Below are positions 5,906-64,000 of a stretch of 64,000 bases of DNA, piece by piece; positions within the stretch are counted from its first letter, which is position 1; the number at the start of each line of letters is the position of its first letter. Origin of the DNA: Histomonas meleagridis 2922-C6/04-290x (taxonomy: Eukaryota; Protista; Parabasalia); the NCBI GenBank assembly GCA_020184695.1, contig JAANOX010000082.1:124001-188000 (forward strand). Direction: 5' to 3'. The translations under genes were made by a program, and so were the position numbers. A model generated the notes under the pieces. The model was not told the origin of the DNA and made no database searches. It saw nothing but the letters and a program-made list of their open reading frames with translations.

Positions 5906-6860
5906 CAAATTCTTTTCAAAAGGTAAATCTTACTTCATTGTTGTGAACAGGTTATGTTACTGTGATAGCAAAGCAGATTGAGGTTAAAATGACCTTTTTA
6001 AGAAATTCAATATTTAATAAAAGTTGTCCATAATTTTTAAAATCGATTATGATCTCAAAATATATTGATCTAAAACTAATCTGTATGTTATTCATCAGGA
6101 CTATATGTTTTTCGCTATCATTAACTTAAATGACATGTTAATGATTTTATAACTACTATATATTATATTTGTATCAAACGTAATAGTAATTGTTATTGAT
6201 GGCAATAAGATTTGCTTTCCACTAGAATCAGGATCCTGATTTGGAGATCTAAAAACGAGAAATGGAGTTGATCCAATCCATTTGAAGGTTTTAAAAAAAG
6301 CTCATTTTAAATGTGATGTTTTCGTTAAAGTGCATCTTTTGTACAAATATGAAATATTTTACAATGAAATCTGATTTAAACGGATTAATGAAAAATGTTT
6401 TAGGAAATTTATAACATGTAAATATATATATATATATATAATTGTCATGCTATATGGCAAGATCTACTTAGGATTAAATTTTTTTCTTTTTCTACTTTGA
6501 ATGGATTTGTTCAATAAGGTTTTAGAATGATAACAATTCTTTACCAAAATGGAAAGAATTCCATTTGATCATTTGCTTCATCTGTTATCTCATCTTGTAT
6601 TCCTTCTTTTTTACTAAACATTTTAATTATTTCGGTAAATTCATTTTTTTTTTTGCATACATGTATGCTGTACTTTATATAATTTTCAAATATAATAATA
6701 AAATCCAAAAAAAATTGGATAAACATTAAGCTTTATACATAAACATCTTTAGCATTAACATCAATTCCTTCTTGTTCAAGAAGTAATTTAACTATTTCTG
6801 TATGACCATTTTTAGATGCAAACATAAGTGCTGTCCAAAATAATTTAAATAATTTCCAAA

Positions 6861-7444
6861 TATTATTTGTGAATTCTCATCAAGCCACTTTTTGAAATGA
6901 AAAAATTAAAAAAAATAATTTCGTTCACAATTTTCAATTCAATTTAAAATTGCAAAAATTTTATTGTTTATAAGAAAGTGCCTCTGCAATTTCCATACCA
7001 GCTCTGCTCATGTCTACTGAAAATAATGTGCAAAACTATTAATGTAAGCTAGTAACGTACAACATTTCATATTCTGATTCTTTTTAAATATAATGAATGC
7101 AACCATTTTGTCATGAGTAATAGGAAATGGTTCTTCGTGTATTAGATTTATCATCACTTTGGCATATGCATGAATCAGCCTATCATATGTACTTTTTCGT
7201 TCCTGCTGAAACATTTGCGGCTGATATTGTATCAGCTTCAGCAAGTAATTGCTCCATCAATGACATTTTAAATATGATTCATAAAAAAAAACTTAAAAAC
7301 AATATTGAAAATTGTGAACGAAATTACTTTTTTTAATTTTTTCATTTCAAAAAGCGTCGATGAGAATTACACATAATAAAGGCAACTTTTTAAGACGATG
7401 ACCAAAGTTCATCGTCTTAAAAAGTTGCCTTTATTATTTGTGAA
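6861..7444. mobile_element. Non-autonomous inverted-repeat element inserted in an ankyrin spacer
   Basis: Imperfect IR of about 67 bp (6872-6938 vs 7304-7368). A 13-bp direct repeat TATTATTTGTGAA lies at 6861-6873 and 7432-7444, and the interrupted spacer resumes on the far side. Confidence 0.55.
7373..7437. repeat. Perfect 29-bp-arm palindrome with a 7-nt loop
   Basis: ATAATAAAGGCAACTTTTTAAGACGATGA-ccaaagt-TCATCGTCTTAAAAAGTTGCCTTTATTAT. Confidence 0.92.
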
Positions 7445-7479
7445 ATATTAAATTATTGAAATAAATTTTAAACTAAATA

Positions 7480-8152
7480 AATAAAACTCTTTATCATTAA
7501 TATCAATTCCTTCTTGTTCAAGAAGTAATTTAACTGTTTCTGTATGACCATTTTTAGATGCTAACATAAGTGCTGTTTTAAATAATTTAAATAATTTCCA
7601 AATATTATTTTGAAATATCGAATTATCAAAATAAATTATAAATAAAATAAATAAATATCTTTTGAATTAATATCAATTCCTTCTTGTTCAAGAACTAATT
7701 TAACTGTTTCTGTATGACCATATTCAGATGCTAACATAAGTGTTGTTTCAAATAATTTAAATAATTTCCAAATATTATTTTGAAATATCGAATTATCAAA
7801 ATAAATTATAAATAAAACAAATAAATATCTTTAGCATCGATATCAATATTGTCTTGTTCAAGAAGTAATTTAACTATTTCTGTATGACCATTTTCAGATG
7901 CTTTCATAAGTGCTGCCCAAAATATTTTAAATAATTTCCAAATATTATTTTGATTTATCAAATTATTAAAATAAATAATATATTTAGCATTAACATCAAT
8001 CCCTTCTTGTTCAAGAAGTATTTTAACTATTTCTGTGTTACCTTTTGAAGATGCTCTAATAAGTGCTGTGTTAAATAATTTAAATATTTCCCAAATATTA
8101 TTTTGAAATATGAAATTATAAAAATAAAAATTAATTAAAACAAATAAATATC
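7480..8152 (-). repeat. Tandem ankyrin module (102 nt) plus spacer (68 or 51 nt) array
   Basis: Modules at 7972-8073, 7819-7920 and 7649-7750 are each 102 nt (34 aa). Spacers are 8074-8141 (68), 7921-7971 (51), 7751-7818 (68) and 7581-7648 (68). Confidence 0.85.
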
Positions 8153-9776
8153 TTTAGTATTAATATCAATTCCTTCTTGTATTAAAATATATTTAATAAG
8201 TTCAATATTTCCTGACTCTAATGAAAATACTAAAATATCTTTCGGAATTTGATTACTTTCAAGAAAATGTTTAATGAGAAATATGTTTCCAATTCTTGCT
8301 GCTTCATTAATAATGTATTCGCAAATTGGCATCCCTTCTTTTTGTAAAAATATAAAAATTTCATAATTATGAGATGAAATACACTTCTTTCCAAATTCTT
8401 CTAAATTATTAATTTCAGCAATTTTATTTTCATAAAGATATTTAAAGATATTATTTCGATGAAATTCAATTGCTGCTTCATATCCACTTTCAAATGATGA
8501 ATGATTTTGTTCACATAAATGAATGATTTCTTCATTTCCACCTGCAACTGCATATTTACCTGTATTATTTACTTTTGCATTACTCATAAGTAAATATTTT
8601 CTCATAAAGTGATGGTTTAATTGTTTGATTAAAATCGAATTCATTTTGTGATGATATTTCTTGAAGTTTTTCTATTTCATCATTTCGAATTATTTTCGAA
8701 ATTTCATTAGGATTATGTCCTTCTTTAATAAGTTTCTTATGAATTTCCCAATCATTCTTTGAAAGTTTTTCAATGTTTACTATCTTTTGTTTCAAATATT
8801 CTTTTTTTTCTAGAAATTTTTTGGACATGTAATGTATAAAATACGATTCTTCTCTCATCTGTAAAACTATGTTTGATTCGCATAAATTTTCTTGAATCAT
8901 TCTCTCAAGAAAATAATTTGATTCTTGAGAATGTATATTTAAAATCATTTGTAAAAAAACTTTATGTATTTTACTTTGAATTTGTTTGTTATCTTCAAAA
9001 TTTTTTATTTCTTTAATGAAATTCATATAGATTTCAAAATCATTCATACCTGATACAAATGATGAATAAATTATTTGACTAATAAGTAAGTTAAATGAAT
9101 AATGGTAATTATTATCAAATATATCAAATATTGAAAGAGTTGATTGGACAATATTTTCTTTATTTAATGAAAATATTATTTTTTGAATATACTGAATTGT
9201 TTCCCAATTGTTCATTTTTGTTTTATCTCTTTGTTTCATTTATAAAAAAATGTGGCAAAATAGTTCGTGGATTTTAAACGGTCGAAAATCTGTACGTTAA
9301 GGGAATATTTTTTTGCTTGCAGCTTTATCCTTGATAAATAAAAACTTATCCTATTCAACAAAGCTCCTGTTTTCTCTAATCTATCTTTCTATATTATAAT
9401 TATCCTTTGCTAACCGATTTGATTTTTTTTGAGTTTTAAATGCCTCTAAAACTCATTCATAGTAAAATTTTTGCTTAGCTAATATACTTTACACCATCAA
9501 AATAATAATTTGTTTCGATTTATATAAGAGAATTTTCAAGCAAAACAAAAACCCGCCTGACAAATTTTATTATTCTAAATTAAGGGGAAAAAATTATTAC
9601 ATTCTCGTGAACAAAATCTTTTCCTGTATAAAATTCTTGGAAAACGATAGGTACACGAACCATTTTCATGTGCATTAATTCCGAGCTATAGTGAAAGGAT
9701 AAAGTTTACTAATAATTTTTCATCGTTACAAAAATAAACGGTTCCCATTGCTATTGTTACGAAAGTTTTTACAATA

Positions 9777-27935: not shown

Positions 27936-28020
27936 AATATGTTTTAATAATTTGAAGCAACACTTCATATAGCAGTTAGAAATAATAATATGGAAATAGT
28001 AAAATTACTTTTTGATAAAG
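27936..28020 (+). pseudogene. Solo ankyrin module with the 3' end of a spacer (same family as 60.2-61.1 kb)
   Basis: aatatgttttaataattt followed by EATLHIAVRNNNMEIVKLLFDK, nearly identical to the modules at 60253-61124. Confidence 0.75.
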
Positions 28021-38939: not shown

Positions 38940-39207
38940 TATTTACAATAAATGTATCTTCTTTATGTTGTTTTTGGTAATAAAAATGTAATTTAATTCA
39001 AAGATATTCATTTCTATGCGCTGTCATCCAAAAAACAGTGGCAATTAATTGTTGTCTTCGAAGACAAAAAGTTTCTCCTGTAAAGAAATACCAAACTATC
39101 AGATGAAATATGAAAAATAGAACTCAAATATATGATGACTTTGCTTAATATAAACTATATATGCACATATAAATTTAAAACGTTTTTCAATTTATTTATA
39201 TGAATTT

Positions 39208-39570
39208 CCATTGTCAATTCCTTCTTGTTCAAGAAGTAATTTAACTTATTCTGTATGACAATTTTGTGATGCTTTTATAAGTGCTGTTCTAAATAATTTA
39301 AATAATTTCCAAATATTATTTGGAAATAAAAAATTATTAAAATTTATTTTGTATTTAGCATTTATTTTCATTCCTTCTTTTTCTAAAATAGTTTTGACAA
39401 GTTCAACACTTCCAAGTTCCATTGAAAATTTTAAAATATTTTTTGAGATTTAATTGAATTTAAGAAAATATTTTGAACGAAATAAATTTCCTGTTAATAC
39501 AGCTTCATTAATAATATCATCATTGATTTTCATTCCTTCTTTAACTAAAAATGAAAATATTTCACATTTT
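39208..39570 (-). pseudogene. Ankyrin gene remnant with one 51-nt spacer
   Basis: FSFLVKEG..SMELGSVELVKTILEKEG..NAKYKINFNNFLFPNNIWKLFKLFRTALIKASQNCHTE*, with frameshifts and stops. Confidence 0.75.
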
Positions 39571-56588: not shown

Positions 56589-57748
56589 GAGTGCAAAACG
56601 GTTGGTTTTCGCGGGTGGTGAAGCGTCTTTGACCGTTAAGAATTCGGTTTGTAAATTTAACAATTTTATAGAAGATCTTCTTGGTAAGTCTCTAACGGAA
56701 TAACCAAAACATATTTTTCAACAATTAAAAAACATTACTATAGCTAATTCAAATGAATATGAAGAAAAAGATAAATATAAAAAAAGTTCATTGAACTTGA
56801 GTTCATAACGGCCTTCTCAGCCAACATTTTAAGTTGAAATAGAAAGTTACTGAAAATATAATGTCTTGCATTCAAACAATACCAATTCCATCCACATGTT
56901 CAACATTATATTCATACTGTCGCTGACTCAATTTGCAAATGCATTTTTTTTTTTGAGATTATACATTCGAATAAATATTATAATACCAAAATCAGTTACA
57001 ATAATTGGTTGCTGTCCTTATACATTACATGTCTGGCTAAGCATAAAGTAATGGCTTTAAACTTGAAAATCTGAGAACCCTGCTTGAGTGTAAAAGATGG
57101 AACAATATTTGATGGAAGCTTTTTCTAAATATTTGAAATGGCATGAGAAAATCAAAATATTATTTCGTCATTGATGAATTAATACCAACAAGAGATAATG
57201 GTATAATGCTCTCTTATCTTGCTTTTAATGTCTTTGAACTAGATTGATTTATTTATTAATTCATTTAATTTTTCACAAGCTAATGTTAAATTTATCAACT
57301 CCCAAAAAACCTGCCCTATATTTAGGGTTTCTTCTTTTACCATATTTTCTATTCCCTCCCATAAAGAAGATGTATATAATAATATGAAGATCATTTCAAA
57401 ATAAAAATCTGTATCCTAAAGTCATCAACTTCAAAAATTTATCTATTTTAATGAAGAACCCCAAGGATATCAAAATTTTGCATAAAATTCATGTATCATT
57501 TTTTTGAAAGATTTTTATTTTATTACTACTAAAAAATTTTGTTTTTAAGGAAAATAATTTTTTTTACTCATCAAATAATGATTTAAAATCATGTGTTTTA
57601 TATTCATTTCTTTAAATGTCTTTGTACAGATCTTATTTAAGTTGACCAATTTTTTGACGTTTTTTTTATATATAAAGAGAAACGAAAATTTATATCTTGT
57701 TAATAACAAAATTATTTTTGATTTATTTATTTACCTTTGTTTCCTGAA

Positions 57749-58292
57749 TTATTTCATCTTATGAATTTGTTCAACAAGCCAATCTAATCCCTCATACAAT
57801 CCATCTCCTGTTGTTGCACATGTTCCTTGAACATGCCATGGACGATTTGTGTTTGTGTTAAGTTTTAATCTATTTCCTAATTCCATTGACTTAACTGCAT
57901 TTGGAAGATCTTGTTTGTTAGTATAAACAAGTAAAACGGAATTACGTAATTCATCTTCTTCCAGAAGTCTATGTAAAACATCACGTGCTTCATCAATTCT
58001 TCCGATATCATTAGAATCAACAACAAAAATAACTCCTTATGATGTGGAAATAATGTCTCCAAAGTGGTCGAATTCGGTCTTGACCTCCAACATCCCATAC
58101 ATTCATGTTAAGTCCTTTGTATTCAAATGTTTCAACATTAAAGCCAATTGTTGGAATTGTTGTTACTCGTTCTCCAAGTTTAAGTTTATATAAAACTGTG
58201 GTTTTTCCTGCTGCATCAAGTCCTAACATTAAAATCCTTGTTTCTTTATTCTTGAACCATTTGTTATATATATCACTAAAAAATAAACCCAT
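57749..58292 (-). pseudogene. ADP-ribosylation factor (Arf) with an apparent 2-nt deletion near 58040
   Basis: MG myristoylation start, [17 protein letters not shown] and WDVGGQ. After the frameshift: [38 protein letters not shown]. Confidence 0.85.
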
Positions 58293-58971
58293 TGTATAAA
58301 TGATGTGACTGAATGCTTGATCAACACATTTCTACAACTTTCCATCTGACCAGAATCGAAATTTAACGATACAAAAATTTAAACGTTCTGTTTCACATCA
58401 CTTTCCCCTCTTAAATTTACATTTGAATTCATGTGGAAATTGATTTTCTTTAATATTTTCTCTGATCGTTCCAGAAGTAAATATTTTGGCTGATAATACA
58501 ACACTTTCTTCAATTTTTGTTTCTTTTTACGAAAAAGAATAGAATATCACTGTTACTATTACACAAATAACAATAATCGCAATTGAAACACAAATAAGAA
58601 ATCAGATTAAAAACTGATGTATTAAATTATAATCACTTTATTCATAAAAAAATTCGTATATGTATAGATTCCATTCGAATTAGAAATTGTATTCAACACA
58701 AATGAATTATAAAATGCAACTGTTTGTGATAATGATATTGCATATGTGAACTAGATAAATATCTGTTTTATGATTTACTTATTAGTGCCTCAAATAAAAA
58801 TAATAAATAAAGTACGAGTTGCCTCCAAATGTAGGCTTTCAAACATTTTACTTACATGATGAAAAACATACTAATAATAAAATTCACATTGATTTAACAA
58901 AGATTTTTAAGTTGTTCAGGAATTTCATTGGAATGAACGATTCGATTTGAATTCGATGGTTTATTTCCTAT

Positions 58972-60279
58972 GTGTTTAGGATTGACACAAAAGTGTCATT
59001 TCATATGGAATTTCAAGCAAAAAGCCAAATTCATGGGAACGAATGGGAAACATTACAATATATTAAGAATTTAATATTCAATTTAAACAAAGAAAATATC
59101 ATTCAATCTTCAAAATTAATTATAAGTAAATTTGATGATATTTATCCATTATCTTTTAATTTAATTATTGTTAGGATTACATATGCAATTACTCTCATAC
59201 GAATGAAAGATATTGATTTATATTTGGATTTTCTTAAAGAAATAAAAAAACTAGAAATGAACATTCATCAAGAAATTGATATTTTTGATATATATGGACA
59301 TTTTCTTGTTAGTAAAAGTACACAAGAATCATATTATCTTCTTTCCAAAATGATTGAAGATAATTTACTTGATAAAAAAATCATTAAAAATATAAAACAC
59401 TCGATTGCTTCTCAAGGATATTTTGTGCAATACATGCCAAATGAAACAATTAAAGAATTGGGGGATTATAAATTTACTGAATATATTCAAAAAAATTATG
59501 AAGAACTTTCAAAGAATGATTGGGAACTTCATAAGAAATTAATTAAAGAAGGAGCTAATCCAAATGAAATTGCAAAAATAATTCGAAATGATGAAATCGA
59601 AAAACTTCAAGAAATATCATCACAAAATAATTTTGATTTTGATCAAACAATTGAACCATCACTTTATGAAAGATATTCATTTGTTAATAAAAAGAATGTT
59701 AGATTAATTGATTATGCAGCATTTTTTTCATCAGTTAAATGTTTTAAATATTTACTTATGAATGGTTCAAATGTATTAAACACGGGTAAATATGCAGTTG
59801 CAGGTGGAAATATTGAAATCATTCATTTATGTGAACAAAATCATTCATCATTTGATAAAGCATCTGAAACAGCAATTAAATTTTATCAAAATGATATCTT
59901 TAAATATATTTATGATAATAAATTAGAAAAAATACAATCAAAGCCAAAAACGCCTAAAGTCACACATTATTTGATAGATCTTTGTATTCAAAAAGATAAT
60001 TATGATATTTTAGCATTTTTGGAAGAAAAAGGAATTGATATTAATGCATGTAATATAAATGAATCAGCAATAAATGGAAATTTATATCTTGTTAAATGTT
60101 TCCTTCAAAATAATCAAATTCCAAAAAATATTTTGCCATTTGCTTCAGAATCAGGAAATGTTGAACTTGTGAAATATATTTTAGATAAAGAAGGAATTGA
60201 TATTAATGCAAAAAATATTCATTTGAATAATTTGGAATATGTTTTAATAATTTGGAACAGCACTTCATATAGCAGTTAG
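58972..60279 (+). CDS. DUF3447-type ankyrin-repeat protein (locus B); ORF ends inside the first spacer
   Basis: Intact 435-aa ORF with IRNDEIEKLQE..LIDYAAFFSSVKCFKYLL..YAVAGGNIEIIHLCEQ and ankyrin repeats. It extends to the TGA at 61122-61124 if four spacers are removed. Confidence 0.85.
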   Translation: MFRIDTKVSFHMEFQAKSQIHGNEWETLQYIKNLIFNLNKENIIQSSKLIISKFDDIYPLSFNLIIVRITYAITLIRMKDIDLYLDFLKEIKKLEMNIHQEIDIFDIYGHFLVSKSTQESYYLLSKMIEDNLLDKKIIKNIKHSIASQGYFVQYMPNETIKELGDYKFTEYIQKNYEELSKNDWELHKKLIKEGANPNEIAKIIRNDEIEKLQEISSQNNFDFDQTIEPSLYERYSFVNKKNVRLIDYAAFFSSVKCFKYLLMNGSNVLNTGKYAVAGGNIEIIHLCEQNHSSFDKASETAIKFYQNDIFKYIYDNKLEKIQSKPKTPKVTHYLIDLCIQKDNYDILAFLEEKGIDINACNINESAINGNLYLVKCFLQNNQIPKNILPFASESGNVELVKYILDKEGIDINAKNIHLNNLEYVLIIWNSTSYSS

Positions 60280-61124
60280 AAATAATAATATAGAAATAGT
60301 AAAATTACTTTTAGATAAAGGAATTGATATTAATGCAAAAAATATTCATTTGAATAATTTTATATATGTTTTAATAATTTGTAATATGTTTTAATAATTT
60401 GGAATATGTTTTAATAATTTTATATATGTTTTAATAATTTGTAATATGTTTTAATAATTTGGAATATGTTTTAATAATTTGGAATATGTTTTAATCATTT
60501 GAAATATGTTTTAATAATTTTATATATGCTTTAATAATTTGGAATATGTTTTAATAATTTTATATATGTTTTAATAATTTGAAACAGCACTTCATATAGC
60601 AGTTAGAAATAATAATATAGAAATAGTAAAATTACTTTTAGATAAAGGAATTGATGTTAATGCAAAAAATATTCATTTGAATAATTTGTAATATGTTTTA
60701 ATAATTTGGAATATGTTTTAATAATTTGGAATATGTTTTAATAATTTGGAATATGTTTTAATAATTTATAATATGTTTTAATAATTTGGAATATGTTTTA
60801 ATCATTTGAAATATGTTTTAATAATTTTATATATGCTTTAATAATTTGGAATATGTTTTAATAATTTTATATATGTTTTAATAATTTGAAACAGCACTTC
60901 ATATAGCAGTTAGAAATAATAATATAGAAATAGTAAAATTACTTTTAGATAAAGGAATTGATGTTAATGCAAAAAATATTCATTTGAATAATTTGTAATA
61001 TGTTTTAATAATTTGGAATATGTTTTAATAATTTGAAACAGCACTTCATATTGCAGTTAGAAATAATAATATAGAAATAGTAAATTTACTTCGGAACAAA
61101 AATTCTAATTGTATTCTTTTATGA
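60225..61124 (+). repeat. 99-nt ankyrin modules alternating with spacers of 8+20n nt (20-bp VNTR)
   Basis: Spacers are 60225-60252 (28), 60352-60579 (228), 60679-60886 (208) and 60986-61033 (48). The unit is NNNATATGTTTTAATAATTT. Confidence 0.92.
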
Positions 61125-61507
61125 TTAGAATACATTTGATTATCTGAAGAAATATTAATAATTTGAAGACTTCCACATGAACTAAAAAGTATGTGGTGAT
61201 ATTAATGTAACACTAGAATTGTTATGTTATTCAAGGAATAACAATTGTTTCCAAGTTTTATTTAAATGTAACATTTTCCTATATTAGCAATCATATCTTG
61301 TATGCTCATTAATTTATCTCATATTGAAGAAGATCTATTTGCTAAAGATTTTGAAGAAAACAATTTAATATGAAAATTTAATGTTATTATTATATTTGCT
61401 AATGATAATCATATTATATATAATAGAAGAAAACATATGATTTACCAAACAACAAAAAGGTTTATTAAAATAATAAATAAATTATTTTATTCTTAAAATA
61501 TGTTTAT

Positions 61508-63080
61508 TTATATTTGACTTATGAATTTTTCTTCTTTGAAATCGTCTGCAAATGGATCTTCTTCAATATTTGAATTATTAATACCAACTGAAAATGTATT
61601 ATATATTTCATTAATTTTATTATTATTTTCATCTGAAACATTCATTTCTTCTTCATTTTGTTTTCGCTTCTTATTTTGATATTTAATCATAAAAATTTTT
61701 ATTATCATTATAAATGCAATAATTATTACAATTACAATAACAATTATAATGATAATTAATGTATTATTATCAAAAGTGTTTATTATTATATCGATATAAG
61801 AAATATAAAAAAATTCGAATAATAAGTAAAATATTATAAATAATATATAAAATCGAAACAAATATATTTAGTTTCAGTTTCAATGAAAGTAATTGAATAA
61901 AATTTTAAGAAAGTATAATGATAAACTGATAAAGTTTTTGTGTATGATAAAGAATAAGTTAAAGTATAAGTATTAACGAATGAAAAATTCATCGAAAATG
62001 TATTAACGAAAGTATTTAAATCAAAATTGCTTTTTGTTCTCGTAAATGTATTTAACTTAGTTAATGTATGAATTAGCATATGTATTTAAATTAGTGAATG
62101 TATCACTTTGTGTGAATGTGCGTGTTGGCTGGTGACATTCGTCAAGTGTTGTTCCCTTAGTAACACTCATATTTCCAAATGTTTCATTTTGATATGTTTC
62201 TATTGTCATAACTGTTGTCGCATTTATATTAACAAATGCATCATTTTTTATTTCTGGTGAAATTACTCCATTAAAATGAATACATTGAAGTGATGTACAA
62301 TTAACAAATGTTCATGAATTAATATAATGACCATTTTCATCAATAAAAATTCTTTCTAAATTAATACAACTTGCAAAAGCATAATCCATAATAGAAGTGA
62401 CTGAATTCGGAATTGTAAATGTTTTACTTTTCATATTCGGATAACTAATAATTTGTGTAATTTCTTTAGCATATAAAACGCCATCATTTTGATAATTCGA
62501 ATATTCAAAATTTTTATCTGAAACATTAATAATTTGAAGATTTGTACATTCTAAAAATGGATTTCCAATGGAAGTAACAGAAATTGGTATATAAATATTC
62601 GCAAGGTTTGTACATCCTCTGAATGCATCAGATCCAATACTTCGTACGCTTACATCTAAAGTTTTCGTTTCAAGTCTTGTACATTTAGAAAATGCATTAC
62701 AACCAATGTTATTACAACGAATTGTAATATTAATTAACAAAATACATTCATAAAATGCACCGTCTCCAATTGAACTCATTAATTTTTCTGGAAATTGCAC
62801 ATATTCTAGTTTTTTAAATGATGCAAATGCTCCACTACCTATATTTTCAACTGACTCTCCAATTATTACTGTTATTAATAAAAACCATTCTCTAATTGCA
62901 TTATTTTCAAGCTCCAACATTATTAATTATAATACATTGTATAAATTAAAGATATTCCAAAAAATTGAACATTTTATCAGTATGTAATTCGGTATTTTTG
63001 TTTATCCACCCTGTAAAAATTATATCTTCGGATCTACACATAATTCAGATACATGACAATGGATTAACCCCATGAAATAA
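61508..63080 (-). pseudogene. BspA-like LRR surface protein, disrupted (copy 2, paralog of 14.3-15.7 kb)
   Basis: Closely matches copy 1 from the LRRs through the tail, with the same stops at 62057-59 and 61834-36 plus a private break near 62312. Confidence 0.8.
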
Positions 63081-63199: not shown

Positions 63200-64000
63200 T
63201 ATCTATGTTTACAAGATGATTTTTTTGTTGAAATTTCATGAATTAATTCAGTTAATTCTGTGTGACCACTATTTGTTGTGCAATCATAAATGCTGTTTTA
63301 AATAATATAAATTTTTTCCGAAAATATTTTGAAATAAGAAATCAAATAAATTAATATGTTTAGAGTTGATATTAATTCCTTTTTGTTCGAGAAGTAATTT
63401 AAATACTTCTATATGTCCTTTTTCAGATGCAACCATAAGTGCTGTTTCGAATAATTTAAGGCATTACCAAATATTATTTTTGAATTAATTAATAACAAAA
63501 TTAATATCAAATAAAACATATAAATATTTTTATTATTAATATTAATTCCTTTTTGCTCGAGAAGTAATTTTACTATTTCTGTATAACCTTTTTCAGATGC
63601 TTTAATAAGTGGTGTTTGAAATATTGTTCACACAAATGAATGATTTCAAAATTTCCACCTGCAACTGCATAATCACCTGTGTTACTTACATTTGCACCAT
63701 TCATAAGTAAATATTTAAAACATTAAATTGATCCAAAATATGCAGCATAATCAATTAATGTTACATCTTCTTGATTAATATATGTGTATCTTTCATAAAG
63801 TGATCGCTCAATAGTTTGGTTAAAATCAAAATCATTTTGTGATGATATTTCTTGGAATTTTTCTATTTCATCATTTCGAATTATCTTCACAATTTTTGAT
63901 GGTTAACTCCTTCTTCAATTAACTTCTTATGAAGTTCCCAATCATTTTTTGAAAGTTCATCATAATTTTCTTTAATTTTATCTCCAAGTCTTGTATGTTC
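63200..64000 (-). pseudogene. DUF3447-type ankyrin gene remnant (locus C, 5' partial) with spacer-separated modules
   Basis: IRNDEIEKFQE..LIDYAAYFGSI and YAVAGGNFEIIHLCEQ, then a deletion, then modules TPLIKASEKGY and TALMVASEKGH separated by 68-nt and 47-nt spacers. Confidence 0.8.

Follow-up and report, generated by a model that had tools for sequence, protein, structure and literature searches.

A stretch of 64,000 nucleotides (nt) from the parabasalid Histomonas meleagridis 2922-C6/04-290x (GenBank assembly GCA_020184695.1, contig JAANOX010000082.1, positions 124,001 to 188,000 of the forward strand), hereafter the window, carries an ankyrin-repeat gene (gene A, 59005–61124) whose repeat-joining loops appear to be encoded in an interrupted form. 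In the arrangement that we propose, AT-rich elements of 17 nt would alternate with single codons at a 20-nt period. We estimate a probability of about three in four that the elements are excised from the gene A transcript at the RNA level and that the kept codons fuse with the modules. Kept codons and flanking modules would then form a continuous protein of 547 amino acids. The same arrangement is conserved across species, and joined forms that lack the elements are found as RNA-only contigs.

Coding frame and 20-nt units of gene A

The initial annotation of this locus had described an intact open reading frame (ORF) of 435 amino acids followed by four stop-free ankyrin modules, and both descriptions stand. 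The ORF occupies 58972–60279 under translation table 11, and the modules lie at 60251–60349, 60578–60676, 60885–60983 and 61032–61124, ending in a TGA at 61122–61124. The deletions of 28, 228, 208 and 48 nt that it had proposed also restore the frame, and the spacers so removed contain no AG. The N-termini of homologues (MEG... or MKG...) indicate that translation probably starts at the ATG at 59005. In a Pfam domain search, the N-terminal part matched DUF3447 (PF11929) and was followed by Ank families, the order that defines the DUF3447-ankyrin family of parabasalids, to which gene A thus belongs. The closest named relatives in a protein database search are H. meleagridis proteins (37–60% identity), and homologues on gut-metagenome DNA contigs are unnamed proteins with about 50% identity. 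No transcript-derived homologues were found in the protein database, where the nearest matches come from metagenomic DNA contigs and not from complementary DNA.

The spacers of gene A consist of a 20-nt tandem unit, composed of a 17-nt element and three kept bases (Table 1). They contain 25 copies of AATATGTTTTAATAATTTGG at up to three mismatches, against 0.2 expected by chance. Because the spacers are a 20-nt tandem repeat, their lengths of 28, 48, 208 and 228 nt follow the series 8+20n. Head-to-tail copies of this kind make a minisatellite (period 20, 26.8 copies) with a higher-order repeat superimposed on it, as spacers 2 and 3 and their modules form a 307-nt duplication with 97% identity. 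The minisatellite is confined to gene A; in its paralogues, genes B and C, the four elements within one spacer differ from each other. Among the 28 units of gene A, the three kept bases carry 7, 16 and 6 differences, whereas no position of the 17-nt element carries more than four. Such a pattern is the opposite of that of a neutral minisatellite and fits a constrained cis-element beside a freely varying codon.

Removal of the 28 17-mers (2, 12, 11 and 3 per spacer) yields a frame of 1644 nt between 59005 and 61124 that encodes 547 amino acids and has one stop only, the natural TGA. No stop occurs among the 24 kept triplets (0/24), which include those of array 2 (TAT GTA GGA TAT GTA GGA GGA GAA TAT GGA TAT). 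The decoded loops read N-G-GTALH, N-YVGYVGGEYGY-ETALH, N-VGGGIGEYGY-ETALH and N-VG-ETALH. Read-through of the ORF into the spacer would instead give NIHLNNLEYVLIIW, and we rejected a C-terminal hydrophobic tail derived from the spacer as merely T-rich DNA in translation. The initial annotation's view that the spacers are neither translated as written nor GT-AG introns is supported.

Joined forms in RNA contigs

The contigs placed on 57700–61700 came from two RNA-labelled runs, X1 and X3 (2023), a small older RNA run (X9) and a DNA run (X2). In one X1 contig (depth 2497), position 60216 is followed by GGA and then directly by 60254. The contig corresponds to gene A minus 60217–60233 and 60237–60253, with the triplet 60234–60236 kept, and reads AAT-GGA-GGA-ACA-GCA (NAKN-G-GTALH). 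The right side of the joint starts with GGA-ACA, which is unique to module 1 within the window. This joined form was absent from the DNA run X2.

Fourteen of the 15 best-supported joints were RNA-only. The remaining one was present in the DNA run too, so DNA-encoded joined forms are detectable by the contig method. On their right side, the RNA-only joints end at 60254, 60581, 60887/60888 and 61035 (the last in five rows), each the first base past the last 17-mer of a spacer, and the skipped stretch has AT..TT ends in 8 of the 15 joints. All 12 of the inserts listed between joint sides are in frame and stop-free and encode loops one to eight codons long that are rich in purines or Tyr, which is what processed paralogues would give. 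Furthermore, the depth of a bin wholly within spacer 2, relative to the neighbouring module bin, was 0.072 in X1 and 0.075 in X3 but 0.69 in the DNA run; these ratios, like the RNA-only joints, are contig-level values summed over the gene family. At that level, the elements appear to be absent from mature RNA and are present in DNA. The roughly 10-fold relative loss of spacer depth and the RNA-only joined forms appear to reflect an unusual removal from RNA, in agreement with one of the mechanisms that the initial annotation had considered.

Transcription of the whole array is consistent with the contigs on either side of it. The first coding block is matched by unique RNA contigs with 0–1 differences. 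The region 61101–61484 is likewise covered by unique RNA contigs and reaches an RNA depth of 1793 versus approximately 600–860 in the ORF body in X1, and 267 versus approximately 85 in X3. A depth at or above that of the ORF body suggests that the gene A transcript spans the entire array. At 61184, in the probable 3' untranslated region, the window has one base more than all three covering runs (X1, X3 and X2). This extra base is a 1-nt assembly error or a strain difference, and departures of 1 nt from the 17-nt rule need caution. Two substitutions were also observed, at 58766 and 59394: T and A in both the window and DNA run X2 are A and T in X1 and X3, at full depth. The simplest explanation is that the RNA and DNA studies used different strains; RNA editing is a further possibility.

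Table 1. Coordinates of gene A features and of related copies in the window
Feature	Positions	Strand	Remarks
First coding block, gene A	59005–60216	+	ATG to the Asn codon AAT after ...GIDINAK; DUF3447 and degenerate contiguous ankyrin repeats
17-nt element ATTCATTTGAATAATTT	60217–60233	+	Opens each of the four arrays; skipped in the X1 contig joining 60216 to 60254
Kept single codon GGA (Gly)	60234–60236	+	Letters between the sides of the X1 joint
17-nt element ATATGTTTTAATAATTT	60237–60253	+	Minisatellite-amplified unit; ends AT..TT, non-sliding
Ankyrin module 1, gene A	60254–60343	+	Reads GTALHIAVRNNNIEIVKLLLDKGIDINAKN
Array 2	60344–60580	+	237 = 12x17 + 11x3; 12 elements, 11 kept codons
Ankyrin module 2, gene A	60581–60670	+	Decoded parse
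Array 3	60671–60887	+	11 elements, 10 kept codons (VGGGIGEYGY); duplicate of array 2 in the 307-nt repeat
Ankyrin module 3, gene A	60888–60977	+	Decoded parse
Array 4	60978–61034	+	57 = 3x17 + 2x3; 3 elements, 2 kept codons (GTA GGA)
Last module and C-terminus, gene A	61035–61124	+	Natural TGA at 61122–61124
Probable 3' untranslated region, gene A	61125–61484	+	RNA contigs 61101–61484
Paralogue gene C	6739–9250	-	Five diverged modules; 4 elements (3 in one case) and kept codons between them
Paralogue gene B, decayed	63200–64000	-	In-frame TAA at 63725–63723; one junction decodes to KN-D-L-G-ETALM
Paralogue fragment D	39201–39440	-	3-element junction decodes to YKFGR-TAL; module with an in-frame stop (39250 region)
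Solitary intergenic copy	27936–28019	+	One element and about 70 nt of gene-A-type module; beside a BspA-like gene

Related copies within and beyond the window

The window holds three further ankyrin genes of the gene A family, and conserved AT-rich spacers part the modules in all three. We decoded all junctions in the window, in three metagenome contigs (L001–L003) and in four H. meleagridis loci (L004–L007) with a single grammar, in which a spacer holds n elements of 17 nt that recur every 20 nt, a single codon is kept between each pair of neighbours, and one further codon (x) separates the last element from Thr. Over this whole set, the gaps between the Lys and Thr codons follow the series 15+17n, with values of 15, 49, 66 and 83 nt. 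One gene C junction is short by exactly one element (gap of 66) and one L001 junction has none (gap of 15), so elements are gained and lost as 17-nt units.

Decoded with this 17+3 grammar, the three window paralogues, the three metagenome relatives and the four H. meleagridis loci regain the canonical ankyrin loop D-x-x-G-x-T-A-L. For example, gene C junctions decode to KD-I-D-G-ETTLM, KD-N-H-G-NTALI and KYI-D-G-WAALM. The loops recovered are DIDGE, DNHGN, YIDGW and DIDGK in gene C, NDLGE in gene B, DSSGY, NYGGE, DHDGS and NKYGK in the metagenome relatives, and DNRGW, DKFGK, EVDGY and DNNGQ in Histomonas. When element lengths of 10–25 nt were tried, a length of 17 alone brought Gly into the G-x-T motif, at 17 of 24 junctions versus 0–2 for each of the other lengths; the 24 junctions share ancestry and are not independent trials. 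The Gly codon varies synonymously (GGA, GGG, GGT, GGC) inside spacers with more than 80% A+T, across species whose proteins are approximately 50% identical. Such variation within AT-rich spacers bears the signature of selection on a translated product. The Thr codon after the x codon varies as well (ACA, ACG, ACC, ACT). Because relatives show this synonymous Thr variation at the position before CA-CTT, that position is coding. We tried ACAG/CA as a 3' splice site and ruled it out by the ACG-GCA, ACC-GCA and ACT-GCT of relatives. GT-AG pairs in other registers (GT inside the unit and ACAG before CA-CTT) were also rejected, every combination being out of frame.

The 78 elements outside gene A have the consensus RTTT-N9-ATTT and contain no GT-AG, ACTAAC or AG. 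Position 1 is A in 50 of them and G in 19, an A is conserved at position 14, and the final two bases are T-T. End pairs of several kinds occur (AT..TT, GT..TT, GC..CT, AA..TC), and A+T exceeds 85%. Elements are about as conserved as modules across species, with identities of 0.68–0.70 and 0.60–0.62, respectively, over a shuffled baseline of 0.42. In the four-element spacer, the third element is the best conserved (about 0.8). The predicted RNA folds of five spacers were no better than those of shuffled controls (z of -0.87 to +0.29).

Several copies appear to be in decay. L007 and gene B contain decayed arrays, and gene B and fragment D look like decaying copies: gene B has the TAA where paralogues carry Lys, has lost its middle part and includes one 16-nt element. 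The intergenic copy at 27936–28019 reads as a DNA-level duplication fragment that took an element along. No joined or template copy was found within the window, no further relatives were found in JGI metagenomes, and no single 17-nt interruption was found in the other window ORFs, for which control lengths gave 1–5 chance matches.

Two published gene models, P0016 and P0026, stop as soon as the first 17-nt element is reached, and the modules go on for more than 1 kb (L004 4287 and L006 4604; GCA_020184695.1 and GCA_020186115.1). Many ankyrin genes in the H. meleagridis annotation are probably truncated. A three-element spacer in L003 (1918–1985), from which processing would remove 51 nt, is also open in frame when kept and was read through by the gene caller as FNDFIFQNNIWGFLKLF. 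Annotated proteins can conceal in-frame spacers of this type.

Gene C also carries a 560-nt insertion (7431–6872, minus strand) with terminal inverted repeats of approximately 68 nt and the flanking duplication CACAAATAATA (7442–7432 and 6871–6861), features that make it look like a non-autonomous DNA transposon. It sits in the third 17-nt element of one junction, which without it is 1 nt off the 83-nt rule. An ARF GTPase gene (57749–58292, minus strand) is intact except for a 1-nt frame break near 58040–58030 (HYF-HII-a-GVIFVVDS; 10 nt where 12 are expected). The break is not an assembly error, because an X2 DNA contig (57743–58174) matches the window with 0 differences. The locus represents a pseudogene copy or else a site of recoding, and the RNA depth over it may come from paralogues.

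Alternative explanations and known systems

In the mechanism that we favour, excision would be length-measuring and independent of GT-AG ends, either as a very derived spliceosomal reaction or through an endonuclease-ligase pathway. Because each 20-nt unit would give exactly one codon after excision, unit gain or loss would alter the length of the loop in frame, and the 12-unit and 11-unit arrays of gene A would be an extreme case of unit gain. We infer that these long arrays are fully processed and that the enzymology is of one of the two kinds named.

Several observations weigh against this mechanism. The RNA label of X1 and X3 is a guess, though the depth contrasts between genes and intergenic regions look like RNA, and the two single-nucleotide polymorphisms at 58766 and 59394 mean that these runs come from another strain than the assembly. 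The evidence consists of assembled contigs rather than reads, with joint sides of just 20–36 nt; thousands of paralogue contigs cross-map at 95% identity or above, and only one run showed the joint specific to gene A. The listed inserts did not include the products predicted for the 12-unit and 11-unit arrays. The grammar itself has exceptions, since some H. meleagridis junctions are 1 nt off (e.g., an 18-nt element with a T7 run) and one decoded codon of L004 is TAA, which a 1-nt shift of the element turns into Lys. Finally, we know of no enzyme that explains a 17-nt ruler.

The alternative that survives best, and that we nonetheless regard as unlikely, is that gene A ends at the TAG at 60277–60279, the downstream modules and minisatellite being untranslated debris and the joined RNA coming from spacer-less paralogues. 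The ORF does stop at this TAG, and the annotators of H. meleagridis ended homologous genes at the first element. Furthermore, the modules of gene A are recent duplicates (97% identity), so their intactness alone proves little, and cross-mapping among paralogues is heavy. However, the diverged modules of gene C and of other species are open in shifting frames, with gaps quantised by 17 nt and canonical loops. The joined forms are also absent from the DNA run, where one DNA-encoded joint was seen, and RNA from 61101–61484 is at or above the level of the ORF.

Very unlikely, in our assessment, is a translational bypass in which the messenger RNA (mRNA) retains the elements and the ribosome hops past each stretch of 17 nt. 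Short non-coding inserts without splice signals do interrupt ORFs in known bypass systems (gene 60 of T4; the byp elements of Magnusiomyces/yeast mitochondria), and the fixed short length of the elements would suit such hops. The canonical loops, as an argument at the protein level, cannot separate bypass from excision. The RNA contigs speak against bypass: known bypass elements are kept in mRNA, whereas the inserts described here are missing from RNA contigs, which have joined forms and an approximately 10-fold lower depth in the spacer than in the modules. Bypass also needs matching take-off and landing codons and RNA structure, but the flanking codons differ (AAT/GGA, GGA/GGA, GAT/ATA...) and no significant hairpin was found. 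Twelve hops in series would, in addition, be extremely inefficient. A scheme with one -1 or +1 frameshift per spacer, suggested by the open frame downstream, was rejected; it adds about 17–22 hydrophobic residues per repeat and leaves the quantised gaps unexplained.

Removal at the DNA level, through programmed elimination or recombination in the transcribed copy, seems more improbable still. Short, AT-rich and precisely excised segments recall the internal eliminated sequences of ciliates. However, the elements have no TA..TA ends, the contigs of DNA run X2 have the spacers and lack the joined forms, and the window contains no joined copy. Nuclear dualism is not known in parabasalids. The initial annotation had entertained both ribosomal bypass and recombinational assembly from DNA cassettes, and the contigs disfavour the two options alike, the first by the elements missing from RNA and the second by the joined forms missing from the DNA run. 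Least probable of all is its proposal that each spacer is a single non-canonical intron with GA..TT ends, removed whole to join NIH to F-x-TALH (NIH/FGT; product NAKNIH-FGTALH, NIHFGTALHIAVR): the deletions restore the frame and a relative's spacer-free junction (NVMFES-ALM) has F at that position, but the RNA joints end at 60254, 60581, 60887/8 and 61035, 1–3 nt downstream, the gene-A-type contig retains GGA and reads NAKN-G-GTALH, the unit is the 17-nt element with one codon kept between neighbours, and the 17-nt quantisation and the Gly codons conserved inside spacers are left unexplained.

Excision from RNA, the reading that we prefer, does not follow the rules of known splicing systems. 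Spliceosomal GT-AG ends are lacking, as the RNA contig fixes the element at 60237–60253 as AT..TT and the spacers have no AG. The trichomonad branch site ACTAA(C) fused to the 3' end is found in no element. U12-type AT-AC introns (5' ATATCC, 3' AC, branch site TCCTTAAC) do not match elements that begin A-T-T-T or A-T-A-T-G and end T-T-T. Splicing of the IRE1/HAC1-XBP1 or transfer RNA type relies on paired stem-loops or a bulge-helix-bulge at the two cut sites, but no significant structure was found in the spacers, and the non-significant fold also led us to reject an RNA structure that brings the ends of the elements together. Euglenid non-conventional introns likewise have non-GT-AG borders in nuclear protein-coding genes. 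Yet they vary in length and pair their ends, whereas the elements have a fixed length of 17 nt and no significant structure.

Some of the closest known counterparts are in the same phylum. Trichomonad introns, about 63 per genome, are 23–196 nt in length, with GT/AG ends and a branch site that is fused to the 3' end (PMC12316389). Type B introns are only 23–25 nt long with the branch motif ACTAA, and genes have at most one or two introns (PMC12316389). In H. meleagridis, introns are scarce, with at most one per gene (PMC8529796). Like the type B introns (PMC12316389), the elements are very short, T-rich, apparently removed from RNA and endowed with a conserved A near the 3' end. Unlike trichomonad introns, they measure 17 nt, have R-T...T-T ends and no AG, occur up to 12 in series with 3-nt exons and are confined to ankyrin loops. 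The introns of Stentor (15–16 nt) and of the Bigelowiella nucleomorph (18–21 nt) have a similarly tiny and near-fixed length, and they demonstrate that pieces of about 15–20 nt can sterically be excised. However, these introns have GT-AG ends, are found in all genes and do not flank tandem single-codon exons. Coding minisatellites share the 20-nt tandem repeat with a copy number that varies, here between the spacers of gene A (2, 12, 11, 3). Their resemblance ends with the unit length, which in gene A is not a multiple of 3 and is frame-neutral only since 17 of the 20 bases are removed. A literature search for 17-nt elements or arrays of single-codon exons found no description of either.

Tentatively, and at less than even odds, the elements may represent a new class of RNA-excised element in the Histomonas/Dientamoeba lineage, with a fixed length of 17 nt, the consensus RTTT-N9-ATTT and no GT-AG, alternating with single codons in those loops of ankyrin repeats that bind the target. 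Slippage by 20 nt could then change a loop in frame and codon by codon and serve as a built-in diversity generator for a large family of binding proteins. If the 17-nt pieces do leave the RNA, they would constitute a mode of gene interruption without a described counterpart, with a strict length ruler, runs of single-codon exons and none of the canonical splice signals, and would put in question the minimum sizes assumed for exon and intron definition. Such a mode would imply that this lineage, whose members include a poultry pathogen and probably also a human gut protist, has an excision machinery not described so far. It would also mean that parabasalid annotations cut many ankyrin genes at the first element, as in P0016 and P0026. 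For the ankyrin family itself, the 20-nt unit would provide a testable route by which repeat slippage varies a binding loop without frameshifts.

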